Sequence record: ON000910.1
Direction: 5' to 3' (one strand)
Length of the DNA stretch: 64,000 nucleotides
Below the pieces are notes generated by a model that was not told where the DNA came from, did not search any database, and was given only the letters and a program-made list of their open reading frames with translations. This document shows positions 6,276-29,753 of this stretch, in pieces (the first letter of the stretch is position 1; every line of letters begins with the position of its first letter). Position numbers and translations under genes: made by a program.

Positions 6276-6616
6276 TTTTTAATCAACCCTGTAATAAATC
6301 GGACGATGAATGGAATGGCAATGATAAACCATACGATGACGCTTTGCTCTAACAGCCACAAGCTGACAAACATTAATACAAAAGCAACGATCAAGTCAAA
6401 CATTAAATACGCGACGACGTGATCATCATTGTGCATAAACCCATTTGTTGCCCATTCATATTTGAATTCTTGGTACGCTCTAGCCCATTCTACGAACGGA
6501 ATTTCACTGCGAAACATGTAGTTTATCAATGTCCCGCCCACAGAAAGTACAATAGGGATGGACAGATTGATCAACCACATCATGACCAGTATTGAAGAGA
6601 TCGTTTTTATTAACAT
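6272..6616 (-). CDS. membrane protein (paralog of next gene)
   Basis: Hydrophobic; MFD-containing TM layout resembles 6610-6945. Confidence 0.7.
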   Translation of the reverse strand: MLIKTISSILVMMWLINLSIPIVLSVGGTLINYMFRSEIPFVEWARAYQEFKYEWATNGFMHNDDHVVAYLMFDLIVAFVLMFVSLWLLEQSVIVWFIIAIPFIVRFITGLIKK

Positions 6617-25861: not shown

Positions 25862-27085
25862 TTATTTTCGCTTGGCTCTTTTTGGCATATGACCGCAGCA
25901 CTCATCAATTAATCTTAGTCTCTTAGCTGCACTATAAGCATTCTTTGAATTTGTTCGCCATTCATTGCGAGTCTTGTATCTCAATGCGTCTTCTTTAAGA
26001 TTTGCAAAAGACCATGACATTAATCGAGGTTTCATATGAGCACAACACTCGTCCAACATTCCTCGCTGATTGGCGACAGCAAATGCACCTCTTGATTTTT
26101 TCTTCCATTCAGAACGAGACTTGTAATTCAATGCATCTTCCTTAATGCGTTGTATTGTCCAATATCCAGATTCCTTTCTAGTACTTTCCATATGAGCACA
26201 ACACTCATCAAGCAACCCTCGTTTATGAGCAGCCGAATAAGCCCCAATCGAGTTTAACCGCCATTCAGAACGAGACTTGTATTTCAATGCGTCTTTTTTA
26301 AGTTTTTTCAAAGACCATTTTAACGTGGATCCACCCAACCCACCAGCTTTAGCACGATTTAAAATAATCCATCCATTGTTTCTGTAGTACTCAATGTATT
26401 CTTTCTCGGCAACCTGTGCAAGTTCTTGATCAATGTAATCAGTTATTTTCTCGAATGTAACATTATCAATTCCATAACGCTCTATTAATCCGATGATTTG
26501 ACTTGTTTTGGTCTTATGATCGCGAAAACGAATCTCGGCATTGTAACTCAATCCAATGTAAATCTCATTACCAGCATAGATTCGATATATACAACGTTTC
26601 AGTGCAGTTTTCATAGGTGCATTCATATGAGAACAGCATTCATCTAGAATGCGTTTACTTAAAGCAGCCGAATAAGCCCCTCTTGATTTTTTCTGCCATT
26701 CAGAACGAGACTTGTAATTCAATGCATCTTCCTTAATGCGTTGTATTGTCCAATATCCAGATGGGGTTTGAATACTTGTCATATGAGCACAACACTCATC
26801 AAGCAACCCTCGTTGATAAGCGGTAGCATAAGCACTATTTGAATTTGTTCGCCATTCAGAACGAGAATTATATTTCAATGCATCTTCTTTAAGATTTTCC
26901 AATGACCACTTTGGTCTAGGTCTTGGGTTTTTTTGCATATGAGCACAACACTCGTCAGTCAACCCCTGTTTACGTGCAGACGAATAAGCACCACTTGATT
27001 TTTTCTGCCATTCAGAACGAGAATTATATTTCAATGCATCTTCTTTAAGACGCTCTAATGTCCAATATCTAGGTGGGGTTTTCAT
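25862..27085 (-). CDS. free-standing GIY-YIG endonuclease flanked by 3+3 ~50-aa repeats
   Basis: CIYRIY...IYIGLS...RFRDH...EKEYI...LN; six W..E.LKEDAL.Y.SRSEW......AY......L.DECC.HM repeats. Confidence 0.8.
   Translation of the reverse strand: MKTPPRYWTLERLKEDALKYNSRSEWQKKSSGAYSSARKQGLTDECCAHMQKNPRPRPKWSLENLKEDALKYNSRSEWRTNSNSAYATAYQRGLLDECCAHMTSIQTPSGYWTIQRIKEDALNYKSRSEWQKKSRGAYSAALSKRILDECCSHMNAPMKTALKRCIYRIYAGNEIYIGLSYNAEIRFRDHKTKTSQIIGLIERYGIDNVTFEKITDYIDQELAQVAEKEYIEYYRNNGWIILNRAKAGGLGGSTLKWSLKKLKKDALKYKSRSEWRLNSIGAYSAAHKRGLLDECCAHMESTRKESGYWTIQRIKEDALNYKSRSEWKKKSRGAFAVANQRGMLDECCAHMKPRLMSWSFANLKEDALRYKTRNEWRTNSKNAYSAAKRLRLIDECCGHMPKRAKRK
26105..26171. repeat. 67-bp perfect direct repeat within the GIY-YIG gene (other copy 26696-26762)
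   Basis: Compared base by base. Confidence 0.9.
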
Positions 27086-27146
27086 AATATTCTCCAATTC
27101 AAAAACTGTAGAATATAAAAAAGGGCTGCATAGCGCAACCCTTTTC
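27083..27146 (-). promoter_or_regulatory. early promoter in terminator hairpin (PeSL-like)
   Basis: AAAAGGGTTGCG-CTA-TGCAGCCCTTTTTT; TTGCGC-17 nt-TATTCT; GGAGAATATTATG. Confidence 0.8.
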
Positions 27147-27154
27147 TTTAACTT

Positions 27155-27763
27155 TTACGAATGAAGCTCTTCATCGTACTGACTAGCAGCATATCGACCA
27201 TCAATACGATAATCACCACAATCAGATACGAGTTCATCTGTATCAGAACCAACCGTAAACACTACTAGTTTACCATACGTCTCAACAGCAATTTGTGTCG
27301 GACGTGATACAACAACTGTCGCGTCATGTGCATATGACGATGTACTATCGCTTGCGGCATAAATGTCTATGATCTCACCGACAACTAGCTCGTGCTCTTC
27401 ATCGACAAAATCAGTTTCTTTATACGCATATACAAGACGACCACTCTTCCACTTACAAGGGTACCAATCCCAATCTTTCGCTGACAACTTCAATCGAGCA
27501 TGTACAAGTACCAACTGACCATCGTATTTTGTCTGTGTCTGCTTGTTACCATTTACTTTATCTTCTTCAACTGAGTAAAAAGCACCATTGTCAGATACTA
27601 GCATATAAGTCGGTTGCTCTATACCACGTATACCATCACCCGAGTCAAGGCAATTCAAATAACCAGACCATGTGTTGTAGTACGTCTCAACTCGTACCAT
27701 ACTACCGCTCGGCATAATCGCTTTCTTGTCTACTACTTTCTTATGTCTTTCAATTCGTTTCAT
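27155..27763 (-). CDS. hypothetical protein
   Basis: 202-aa ORF. Confidence 0.7.
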   Translation of the reverse strand: MKRIERHKKVVDKKAIMPSGSMVRVETYYNTWSGYLNCLDSGDGIRGIEQPTYMLVSDNGAFYSVEEDKVNGNKQTQTKYDGQLVLVHARLKLSAKDWDWYPCKWKSGRLVYAYKETDFVDEEHELVVGEIIDIYAASDSTSSYAHDATVVVSRPTQIAVETYGKLVVFTVGSDTDELVSDCGDYRIDGRYAASQYDEELHS

Positions 27764-27773
27764 CTTATAACCC

Positions 27774-28082
27774 TTAGAAAAATTCTACATCACTGCAACG
27801 CTTGTAATCGTCTGCCGTTACTGGCACTCGTTCGTTCATATAGAACACACCGTTCTTACAACAAGCCCAATCTAATTGACCATACTTGTTCTCTTCTTGA
27901 ACATACATATACACAGTACGACCACCGTCTTCGTTGATAGACATACCAATGTCTTTCTCCCATTTCTCACACGGAAATGATAGTAGAAAACGCGAACCTA
28001 ACTGAACCCACGCCTCTTCTAAACTGGCAAACTCACCAGACCAACCACCACGCAACAAATTACCCAATCTGTACTTCTTCAT
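27774..28082 (-). CDS. hypothetical protein
   Basis: 102-aa ORF. Confidence 0.7.
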   Translation of the reverse strand: MKKYRLGNLLRGGWSGEFASLEEAWVQLGSRFLLSFPCEKWEKDIGMSINEDGGRTVYMYVQEENKYGQLDWACCKNGVFYMNERVPVTADDYKRCSDVEFF

Positions 28083-28402
28083 ATCTTAACCTTATTAATG
28101 TTCTCTATAATGTATTTCAACCACGACTTGCGCTCATATTCACGCAACTTACGACGCTCACAAGGCGGATGATACGCACAGATAAAAGAATAACAATCTT
28201 CTAAATCATTCGGCATATCACTCTGGCGTACATACATACGCTGCAAATGCTTTAATTTAAGCTTAATCAAGCTAACCATTTCTGAATTCACACCACGCTG
28301 TAGCTCTAAACAGGTGTACACGCGATGCAACTCACCACAATTCAATAACTCTAGAGCACGAGCACGTACATGGCGATTCACTCTGTAATTCTTAAACAAC
28401 AT
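28079..28402 (-). CDS. YTC...WL family paralog 6
   Basis: Start MLFKNY coupled by TAATG; RALELL...VYTCLEL...ERKSWLKYII. Confidence 0.65.
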   Translation of the reverse strand: MLFKNYRVNRHVRARALELLNCGELHRVYTCLELQRGVNSEMVSLIKLKLKHLQRMYVRQSDMPNDLEDCYSFICAYHPPCERRKLREYERKSWLKYIIENINKVKI

Positions 28403-28548
28403 TACCAATTCCCTGTGAACATCATTACACCACAGAACATCGTGGCGATTAATGCAAAGTCTAAAATACATGTACCAAGGTACAAGTCACTTGGTCGCTC
28501 ACTGTATTGCATGTCGCGACTCATATAAAATAACGCCAATGTAATCAC
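28402..28548 (-). CDS. small membrane protein, 48 aa (not in track)
   Basis: GGAGGT RBS, GTG start: MITLALFYMSRD...FCGVMMFTGNW. Confidence 0.55.
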   Translation of the reverse strand: MITLALFYMSRDMQYSERPSDLYLGTCILDFALIATMFCGVMMFTGNW

Positions 28549-28581
28549 AATTACCTCCGTAGGCAGTTCAAATCTCTTTGC

Positions 28582-28611
28582 ATTCTCTCACATATTGCCG
28601 CTGGCTGTCAA
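28582..28611 (-). promoter_or_regulatory. probable sigma70 promoter pointing away from the DnaA-box array
   Basis: TTGACA-18 nt-GAGAAT. Confidence 0.5.
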
Positions 28612-28718
28612 GCAAGAAGATGCGAAGCGAATTAGATTTTCGTAAATGGTGTAAGGTTTTAGACTGCCGCGTACCACACAGGAGCCGATGAGACTTTCAC
28701 CAATTTTTCACTAAAAAG

Positions 28719-28827
28719 TTATCCACATTATCCACAGACTTATGCACAGTCAAATCATGTTTTTATACACAGATTTCAGACACTTATGCACAAACTCATA
28801 CACATATTATCCACAGACTTATGCACA
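28719..28827 (+). repeat. array of 8 co-oriented DnaA-box-like 9-mers
   Basis: TTATCCACA at 28719, 28728, 28807; TTATGCACA at 28740, 28784, 28819; TTATACACA at 28763; TCATACACA at 28796. Confidence 0.9.
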
Positions 28828-29206
28828 TGTACATTTAAACGAGGCATGGTGCGATATATTAAAAACAATACTATATGTACCATGCTCTGAGACGCTGTGA
28901 GAGCGATTCTAAGCGTTTTTAGTCATTGTTTGACATATCGCTCAAGCACCATCCTGCTATTGCTGCTAGAGCACATAGAAGCAGCATGAGGTAGCCGATA
29001 GGTATATCGTTTAGTAGATTGATTAGTGTTTGCATTACGATAGTTTAAAGCTCAATGATAGAATATCAATTAGGTAATACTGAATGATACAGTTAAACGC
29101 AGTTGTTATTAGCAGAGCCACGAATGGAACTGTTCGTTTTGATTTATCGGTTACAAACAGATATGTAGTGAGAATCAAGATTAAGATTGATAGTGCGAAC
29201 ATGAGT

Positions 29207-29422
29207 TTACCCTACTATTAGATTAAAGCGTGCAGCGACATAGCTTGCTCGTTGGTTGTTGTCATTAGTAATACGAATCATAGGTGGTTTGTTTGTATGT
29301 TCGTTTACGTTATACATGTGAACGACATATTCTTTGCCGAATGTCAAGCCGCTAGGTGGTTCTGGTTTATCGATACGAGTTGAAGTATTGTCTATGCATA
29401 TTGCTTTGATAGTTTGATTCAT
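29207..29422 (-). CDS. small hypothetical protein
   Basis: KAICID...LTFGKEY motif. Confidence 0.7.
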   Translation of the reverse strand: MNQTIKAICIDNTSTRIDKPEPPSGLTFGKEYVVHMYNVNEHTNKPPMIRITNDNNQRASYVAARFNLIVG

Positions 29423-29583
29423 ATTGCGCCTGCCGTTACGTGTAGTAGAACATACGAGACAAAGCCTAGAACAGCAGTGATTACTAGTTTCACGAATCTA
29501 GGTTTGTTAATGAAGCTGAAGATACTCATGCCAGTGAGTATTGCACAGCATAGAAGTGTCATTAGTAGTATTGTCAAGCTCAT
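29419..29583 (-). CDS. small membrane protein (~54 aa, not in track)
   Basis: MSLTILMTLLCCAIL...; ATGA overlaps. Confidence 0.55.
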   Translation of the reverse strand: MSLTILLMTLLCCAILTGMSIFSFINKPRFVKLVITAVLGFVSYVLLHVTAGAI

Positions 29584-29753
29584 AGTGTTACTCCGTATTT
29601 GTGAATCACAATCATGTTAGCTAGATTAACGACAGCGCATATGACAAGGAAGATACAGATGAAAGTTTTGTATTCTTTGCTCATGATGTTTTCAACTGAG
29701 TCGAACGTCAAGACTACAGTGAACACAAGTATAATAATAGATAGTCCGATCAT
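29580..29753 (-). CDS. small membrane protein
   Basis: AAGGA RBS; two TM segments. Confidence 0.6.
   Translation of the reverse strand: MIGLSIIILVFTVVLTFDSVENIMSKEYKTFICIFLVICAVVNLANMIVIHKYGVTL

Follow-up and report, generated by a model that had tools for sequence, protein, structure and literature searches.

A conserved array of eight co-oriented DnaA boxes in an early-type region of the KVP40-like Vibrio phage XZ1

The window analyzed here, a stretch of 64,000 nucleotides (64 kb) from sequence record ON000910.1, belongs to Vibrio phage XZ1, a member of the Straboviridae (genus Schizotequatrovirus) that infects V. alginolyticus and has a genome of 249.5 kb; an earlier note, made from the letters alone, had correctly recognized a KVP40-like phage of the T4 type. 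Position 1 of the window is position 124001 of the record, and the 1-kb stretch around the array described below is 100% identical to XZ1. The locus is common to 28 phage records, all of which are KVP40-group Vibrio phages. The surrounding genes are small, have no known function and are all encoded on the - strand, and the surroundings have the look of a T4-type early region. Sizeable non-coding gaps are few in this densely packed region, and the array is situated in one of them (~28549-28918). The earlier note had described a larger, gene-free gap (28550-29206); the array is indeed non-coding, but the proposed gap holds two small - strand ORFs, one immediately to the right of the actual gap (28919-29035) and the other at 29035-29202 (phrog_32164), which is annotated in KVP40. 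On its left side, the gap adjoins a 48-aa ORF of the - strand (28402-28548; phrog_16778, E 2e-33), which has a GGAGG-5 nt-GTG start and is the first gene downstream of a sigma-70-like promoter. The records of R10Z, R11Z and PVA23 end within the gap; these ends are plain permutation breaks, and a physical genome end at this site was rejected.

The array itself extends from 28719 to 28827 on the + strand and consists of eight DnaA boxes in the same orientation. Pattern searching and reading of the sequence identified seven exact TTATNCACA sites, starting at 28719, 28728, 28740, 28763, 28784, 28807 and 28819 (boxes 1-5, 7 and 8), and one weak box, TCATACACA, that starts at 28796 (box 6) and carries a single mismatch to TTATNCACA. 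Boxes 1, 2 and 7 are perfect copies of TTATCCACA (three of the eight), boxes 3, 5 and 8 read TTATGCACA, and box 4 reads TTATACACA. The start-to-start spacings are 9, 12, 23, 21, 12, 11 and 12 bp, and the members of three box pairs (2-3, 5-6 and 7-8) are separated by 3-bp spacers. The pattern search thereby confirmed the co-orientation, the spacings and the numbers of perfect and consensus-fitting boxes given in the earlier note, and the exact repeat reported there corresponds to the 21-mer TTATCCACAGACTTATGCACA, a box pair with a GAC spacer that is present exactly twice on the + strand, at 28728-28748 and at 28807-28827, the latter copy being the pair nearest to an AT-rich element.

Exact TTATNCACA sites occur 13 times on the two strands of the 64-kb window, compared with 4.3 +/- 2.1 expected from shuffled sequences, and seven of them fall within 109 bp. 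When the background outside the array is taken as the Poisson rate, the probability of seven same-strand sites within 109 bp is ~1e-20, or ~1e-15 after correction for all positions and both strands. The genome-wide count that had been proposed as a check gave 24 exact sites on both strands of XZ1; the 17 sites outside the array are scattered, and ~16 are expected from composition. A piecewise scan of the whole XZ1 genome detected no second box cluster. The array is a real cluster of DnaA boxes and the only one in the XZ1 genome.

Conservation in relatives, another of the checks called for, was found in nine phages that represent three lineages. The seven exact boxes are all kept in ValKK3, VH7D, Va3, phi-Grn1, phi-ST2 and R11Z, and the array is also matched in R10Z and PVA23 (blastn with the array as the query), whereas VS1, VS2 and QD01 retain five exact boxes together with near boxes. 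In nt-1, which is classified in another genus (Mylasvirus), and in CZ01, the array is 84% identical, while the flanks are far more diverged. Searches for further relatives returned only KVP40 and VH7D from IMG/VR, and a metagenome scan with an 18-mer of the flank gave 52 chance matches and no relative. In an alignment of nine array-bearing phages, which cover the three lineages and two genera and include nt-1, variable columns account for 5 of the 64 specified positions of the boxes, 22 of the 37 spacer positions and 4 of the 8 free fifth “N” positions. The difference between specified and spacer positions (Fisher p = 3e-8) and that between specified and N positions (p = 0.007) are contrasts between classes of columns in related sequences and not counts of independent events. 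Only one indel, of 1 nt and located in a long spacer, occurs across the alignment. In every lineage, boxes 3, 4, 5 and 7 match the consensus and box 6 is weak. The substitution pattern tracks the DnaA consensus, including its free fifth position, and this is the signature that would be expected where the selected property is recognition by a protein of DnaA-box specificity. Judged from the alignment, the array is selected as a set of DnaA boxes, and the fixed pattern of strong and weak boxes fits a simple sink less well than an ordered nucleoprotein complex.

The KVP40 lineage provides a natural negative for this locus. KVP40, phi-pp2 and TCU-VP03 have nearly unchanged flanks on both sides, with the AT-rich element and the spacing preserved, but lack the boxes: two invariant anchors, ACACAGGAGCCGATGAG and ACGAGGCATGGTGCG, lie 164-165 bp apart in these three phages and 163 bp apart in ten array-bearing phages, and the interval between the anchors contains no DnaA box, with only remnants such as TTAC. 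The whole KVP40 genome carries 10 exact TTATNCACA sites, none of which has C or G at the fifth position, and a scan of the whole genome revealed no box cluster anywhere, indicating that the array has not been relocated in KVP40. Since KVP40-type relatives exist without the boxes, the array is dispensable for this kind of phage; likewise, since the flanks are conserved in this lineage without the boxes, the function of the flanks, whatever it is, needs no DnaA. Whether the array was gained or lost depends on the rooting of the tree of the flanking 202-aa gene, in which KVP40 is placed on the longest branch. Loss in the KVP40 lineage is favored by the genus-level taxonomy, in which nt-1 belongs to Mylasvirus.

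No significant DnaA homolog was found in XZ1 by tblastn with E. coli DnaA (best E 0.21), and no Vibrio phage was among the matches listed (40 of 51) in a search of a phage collection for DnaA homologs. As the phage encodes no DnaA of its own, host DnaA is the obvious ligand. The E. coli DnaA-box consensus is recognized by Vibrio DnaA, and it is highly probable that host DnaA binds to the array, which would then serve as a cis-acting binding platform. The degenerate form of the 21-mer box pair is present in more than 120 bacterial genomes from many phyla, and 31 of the 120 bacterial pair loci that were fetched have a DnaA-type Walker A motif within a few kb. With regard to a possible capture of a host origin, no Vibrio is among the matches listed for the 21-mer pair, and the pair has no plasmid match. 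Phased, co-oriented arrays of three to nine boxes were also found in more than 120 IMG/VR contigs, and some of these arrays are probably coding repeats. A cluster of DnaA boxes on a viral or mobile genome is a known kind of element; the present one is new for T4-type phages and is unusually well supported by comparison. The earlier note knew of no description of such an array in KVP40-like phages, and a literature search likewise found no paper that ties KVP40-like or other T4-type phages to DnaA boxes.

Conserved elements are present on both sides of the array. The sigma-70-like promoter at 28582-28611 on the - strand (TTGACA-18 nt-GAGAAT, with an extended -10 TG; 10 of 12 matches) reads away from the array and toward the small early-type ORFs; the array is located upstream of it, with 108 bp between the -35 element and box 1. 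The promoter blocks TGTCAA and ATTCTCTCACA are invariant in nine phages and recognizable in nt-1. The conserved non-coding segment between the promoter and the array (28612-28718) includes the invariant ACACAGGAGCCGATGAG (28676-28692) and a T5-N4-A5 palindrome (28704-28717) that adjoins box 1, and its folding is not significant on either strand. On the other side, an AT-rich element of low stability, GATATATTAAAAACAATACTATATGTACCA (28853-28882), begins 25 bp 3′ of box 8 and may act as a DNA unwinding element. In its left part, GGTGCGATATAT, every lineage examined, KVP40 included, has the same sequence, apart from one changed base in phi-pp2. The element belongs to the 0.01-0.1% least stable 20-30-mers of the window; genome-wide, however, it is only about the 12th least stable locus (25-mers). 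An imperfect palindrome, GAGGCATGGTGCG...TGTACCATGCTC, is centered on the element (28840-28889, + strand) and could form a hairpin or a cruciform. The z-scores for folding of its + strand RNA are -3.8 in XZ1, -4.4 in KVP40 and -0.6 in nt-1, and consensus folding of the right flank detected no compensatory changes in it. Farther to the right, a small + strand stem, ACGCT...AGCGT, followed by TTTTT (28892-28920) lies beside the stop codon with which the upstream ORF of the - strand ends; it looks like a + strand terminator and folds weakly (z-score -0.5), and the terminator scan made no call. TAAGCGTTTTT is unique in the XZ1 genome, in which no recurrence of the flank motifs was found, and the gap has no Rfam match. 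A promoter scan detected no convincing promoter that reads into the AT-rich element; candidate sources of transcription into it are - strand read-through from the upstream ORFs and a weak site at 29069-29042.

We tentatively favor a reading in which the array serves, with the assistance of DnaA, as a module for starting replication or unwinding the DNA, one that the phage can do without. Vibrio DnaA in its ATP-bound form would assemble into a head-to-tail oligomer on the co-oriented boxes, with their conserved strong/weak pattern, and the end of this oligomer, 25 bp from the conserved AT-rich palindromic element, may help to open that element. The T4-type machinery of the phage (gp32, gp59, gp41, gp61 and gp43) would then enter the opened DNA. 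An R-loop formed at the AT-rich element by a stalled read-through transcript is a possible contributor, and the neighboring early promoter may add transcriptional activation. The family has the complete T4-type set of replication and recombination genes, which, as annotated in KVP40, comprises rnh, gp59, gp32, gp41, gp61, gp43, gp45, gp44/62, uvsX/Y/W, gp46/47 and topoisomerase II. Because T4-type phages possess several origins, which are redundant, and recombination-dependent replication in addition, a module of this kind could be lost, as in KVP40.

Several features speak for a DnaA-assisted origin. The complex looks ordered, to judge from the fixed positions, the fixed strong/weak pattern and the single orientation of the boxes, and the location in a non-coding site adjoining a conserved early promoter also appears to favor this reading. 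A further one is a likeness to the left half of E. coli oriC (R1, R5M, tau2, I1 and I2 together with the DUE), which similarly has co-oriented strong and weak boxes spaced by 11-12 bp and an AT-rich element on the 3′ side of the TTATCCACA strand, beyond a G+C-richer spacer; the polarity in XZ1 is that of R1 to the DUE. This match in polarity carries little weight, as the AT-rich side was distributed 50:50 with respect to box orientation among 112 viral and 115 bacterial arrays, so that a match had a prior of one half. Unlike oriC, moreover, the XZ1 array lacks GATC sites, a right-half array of opposed boxes, a convincing IHF site, clear DnaA-trios and 13-mers (neither a regular run of 3′-(G/A)AT-5′ nor 13-mer repeats were seen on inspection of the array region); in addition, the phage brings its own helicase loader, and the array is dispensable. 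In the plasmid and prophage origins of P1 (oriR), RK2 (oriV) and pSC101, mobile elements open their DNA by means of the host initiator, aided by DnaA boxes that lie in tandem and in one orientation along the border of the origin. These replicons also have iterons for their own Rep proteins and use host DnaB/DnaC, whereas no Rep gene or second set of iterons is visible at the XZ1 locus.

Within the same family, the origins of T4 pair a promoter with A+T-rich DNA, have no motif in common and are each redundant and dispensable, and one of them, oriE, has evenly spaced direct repeats and an early promoter (PMC3016281). The XZ1 locus corresponds to T4 oriE, oriF and oriG in that direct repeats, a sigma-70-type early promoter and A+T-rich DNA lie no more than a few hundred bp from each other; the repeats, 9-12 or 21-23 bp apart, and the TTGACA-18-GAGAAT promoter reproduce the anatomy of oriE, and the likeness is one of anatomy only. 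The T4 repeats are not described as DnaA boxes. T4 oriF and oriG also depend on MotA-activated middle promoters; asiA is annotated in KVP40, but no gene is annotated there as motA, and the middle-promoter origins of T4 therefore cannot be directly copied in this family. Neither GC skew, which is negative on both sides, nor gene orientation switches at the array. The same is true of T4 oriA and oriC (PMC3016281), and the missing switch thus weighs only weakly against an origin. Further points against an origin are the KVP40 flanks, which are conserved without boxes, the AT-rich element, which is not exceptional genome-wide, and the lack of DnaA-trios, GATC sites, a skew or orientation switch and a convincing promoter into the AT-rich element. 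The position of the very similar eight-box cassette of T5-like phages, far from their mapped origins (10.1101/866236), also counts against it.

A rather unlikely alternative is that the array acts as a sink, which would titrate host DnaA, amplified by the phage copy number, and thereby block host initiation or derepress DnaA-repressed host genes, to the advantage of the phage. Eight consensus boxes in each genome, at the copy numbers of a burst, would outnumber the DnaA molecules usually available in a cell, and dispensability fits an accessory device for host takeover, as does the location of the array among small early genes of no known function, the usual place for takeover functions. KVP40-type phages reportedly lack several of the host-DNA-degrading enzymes of T4, so that the host chromosome may persist during infection. 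However, a sink needs a number of boxes and not fixed positions, whereas the positions, the weak box 6 and the spacing have been kept across genera without turnover; the boxes are confined to a single locus, with no enrichment elsewhere; and titration would be strong only late in infection, when halting host initiation matters little. The closest known device is datA of E. coli, likewise a DnaA-box cluster outside the chromosomal origin that could lower the level of active DnaA, with which the earlier note had compared the array in view of its co-oriented boxes and two near-IHF sites (12/13); the note also remarked on the absence of GATC. datA requires a specific, functional IHF site located between its essential boxes. 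IHF-like matches of this quality occur at chance frequency (126 in the window, with 115 +/- 10 expected), and the one inside the array (28753-28765) has at least two mismatches in the VS1/QD01 and nt-1 lineages. The absence of GATC was correctly observed, and no GATC-free stretch in the window is longer than the one that holds the array (27371-29748); with 135 GATC sites in 64 kb, about one such gap is expected by chance, and the absence is not significant. As the IHF-like site is at chance level and not conserved and the lack of GATC carries no significance, the analogy with datA is left without specific support. What stands of the earlier proposal is the host-DnaA array, which is genuine and selected, and not the IHF and GATC arguments; the alternative of origin or sink is only partly supported, and a transcriptional role is as viable as a sink.

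Such a role would assign to array-bound DnaA the part of a roadblock or insulator between early units transcribed in the same direction, or that of a promoter modulator, which we consider improbable to about the same degree as a sink, and it is similarly improbable that early expression would in this way be coupled to the DnaA-ATP status of the host. The array falls exactly in the interval that separates the last ORF of the upstream - strand run from the next conserved promoter on that strand, and no strong intrinsic terminator in the - direction was found between these units. In a T4-like metagenomic contig (L172), an array of five to six boxes is located directly upstream of sigma-70-like -10/-35 elements and small ORFs. 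DnaA is an established transcription factor that can block transcription in an orientation-dependent manner and that stimulates lambda pR. On the other hand, box 1 is 108 bp upstream of the -35 element, too far for ordinary promoter control; known DnaA-regulated promoters have one or two boxes and not eight; and the KVP40 lineage has the same promoter and flanks without boxes. A hybrid of this explanation with a DnaA-assisted origin can also be conceived, in which a transcript stalled at the AT-rich element could prime replication.

The closest precedent in a virulent phage, by analogy, is the cassette in the injection-stop (iss)/first-step-transfer region of T5-like phages, which has eight DnaA boxes, with 3-bp-separated pairs, in a non-coding early region; the boxes were first noted in 1987, the region has been compared across 25 phages, the T5 origins map away from the cassette, and its function is not known (Davison, 10.1101/866236). 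Both phage types are virulent and have about eight boxes, 3-bp-spaced pairs and a conserved non-coding region among the earliest genes. In T5_ev219, TTATCCACAgacTTAATCACA is followed after 37 bp by TTATCCACAgacTTATCCACAtgt, which has the same GAC spacer as XZ1 and is almost identical to the XZ1 pair unit TTATCCACAGACTTATGCACAtgt. A further, quite improbable function for the XZ1 array is one that has been proposed for the injection-stop region of T5, namely a membrane or positional tether, in which membrane-associated DnaA would capture the array and anchor incoming or replicating phage DNA. However, the genomes of T4-type phages are circularly permuted and enter the cell in a single step, so that no fixed region is the first to enter. 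Furthermore, the T5-like boxes, about half of which are non-consensus, form two inverted-repeat modules in the terminal repeat, whereas those of XZ1 form one co-oriented array at an internal locus; the T5-like phages (Demerecviridae) and XZ1 (Straboviridae, with a circularly permuted genome) have no homology outside the boxes; and the T5 model is itself only a proposal.

It is very improbable that the boxes are instead iterons for a phage-encoded protein that shares DnaA-box specificity, with host DnaA not being the ligand; a phage protein has been proposed in this way for the iterons of T4 oriE. Roughly two thirds of the genes of these phages lack a known function, and T4 oriE has evenly spaced direct repeats for which no ligand is known (PMC3016281); by contrast, the repeat in XZ1 equals the DnaA consensus down to the degenerate fifth position, T5-like phages and bacteria from many phyla use this pair unit as well, and XZ1 has no homolog of DnaA domain IV. 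Finally, the chance that the array is a by-product of a + strand coding region, a non-coding RNA or a fortuitous repeat is negligible: all three + frames are open across it in XZ1, QD01_174 is annotated across it and the right flank folds well as + strand RNA, but the chance probability given above, the lack of an Rfam match and of covariation, and variation that tracks box versus spacer and not codon position all oppose this. DnaA boxes are free of stop codons in the + frames, so that open frames across the array are expected. Coding across the array was rejected, as XZ1 has no conserved start codon and the lineages, owing to the 1-nt indel between them, share no reading frame.

Replication that proceeds independently of the host initiator has its textbook example in the T4-type phages. 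They load their own helicase and have no known need for DnaA, both of which count against a DnaA-assisted origin; to our knowledge, their origins are poorly defined outside T4 oriF and oriG. The array suggests that, despite having replication machinery of its own, a virulent phage still makes use of the host initiator or interferes with it. It is possible, if somewhat doubtful, that a virulent T4-type lineage with a full replisome of its own recruited host DnaA to license one of its replication starts; if so, phage DNA synthesis would be coupled to the DnaA-ATP level of the host, that is, to its growth state, and the T5-like cassette and the arrays of viral contigs would be signs of a “DnaA-sensing” module that is widespread among virulent phages and has escaped study until now. 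The array is an easily mutated handle on the start of first-round replication in T4 relatives without MotA and on whether virulent phages read or manipulate the DnaA status of their hosts, for which the KVP40 lineage offers a natural “knock-out” and nt-1, QD01 or CZ01 on Vibrio natriegens a BSL-1 system, and it may also help to explain the DnaA boxes of T5.

Groups of candidate DnaA boxes were also found in phages beyond the KVP40-like relatives. Escherichia phage T5_ev219 carries two co-oriented DnaA-box pairs, separated by 37 bp (locus L270 301-390, corresponding to positions 6449-6538 of the record), in which the boxes flank a GAC spacer as they do in XZ1; these pairs overlap in part an annotated "hypothetical protein" of 35 aa. 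Parts of the XZ1 array are matched at 83-100% identity in five Microviridae-like records of 4.7-5.6 kb, which represent small ssDNA phages (Dipodfec virus UOA04_Rod_1057, bajarodmic virus 581, Gokushovirus WZ-2015a, and faecal phages); the matching stretches are putative DnaA-box pairs or arrays of these genomes' own. A further group of five to six co-oriented boxes is located at L172 5800-6000 in the 77.7-kb T4-like IMG/VR contig IMGVR_UViG_3300044675_004257, which encodes a gp39-type topoisomerase with 39% identity to that of XZ1. Immediately downstream of these boxes come TATAAT and TTGCCA-17-TATAAT elements together with a series of small + strand ORFs.

The whole genome of the array-lacking phage KVP40 (244.8 kb, L271-L275) contains only 10 exact TTATNCACA sites, the fifth base of every one being A or T, and neither TTATCCACA nor TTATGCACA occurs anywhere in it. 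In XZ1, GATC is scarcer than expected over the window as a whole (135 observed vs. ~231 from base composition). Several deposited genomes were linearized within the non-coding gap around the array, namely MT612988 and MT612989 (R10Z and R11Z), ON190025 (PVA23), and ON190024, OQ164647, and OM782678. Because the two ends of the R11Z record meet at window 28622/28623 without gap or duplication, this record end is an arbitrary permutation break.

To the left of the gap, a 411-aa protein encoded on the - strand (window 25862-27097) matches phrog_20046. Its core, a weak match to GIY-YIG/homing endonucleases, is flanked by a ~55-aa module (...LKEDALKY.SRSEW...AY.AA...L.DECC.HM) repeated approximately six times; its Pfam matches to "Insulin" and "TcdB_N" are artefacts of the Cys-rich repeat. 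An extra ORF of ~180 aa, for which a Pfam search returned no match, is inserted immediately to the right of the conserved hairpin in phi-Grn1 (L006 1520-2065) and phi-pp2 (L009 1521-2060). As the first of these phages has the array and the second lacks it, the insert has the appearance of a mobile ORF.

The phage has the heptamer GTGCGAT after its last DnaA box and before its AT-rich element (window 28849-28855), and the complement of this heptamer is found between R1 and the right 13-mer of E. coli oriC (L143 ~140-146); this likeness is probably a coincidence. The annotated CDS QD01_174 (L011 1573-1878, + strand) spans the array of phage QD01; it is probably a spurious annotation, because DnaA boxes are free of stop codons in the + frames and the ORF lacks conservation. 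At window 28850-28891 (+ strand), a micro-ORF, (GTG) MRYIKNNTICTML-stop, shares sequence with the AT-rich palindrome. As read from the sequences, the frame of this micro-ORF is retained in XZ1, VS1, KVP40, phi-pp2, and nt-1, the last of which has a 12-nt insertion that leaves the frame intact. Because it is cut short in QD01, VS2, and CZ01, conservation over this segment more likely acts at the DNA level.
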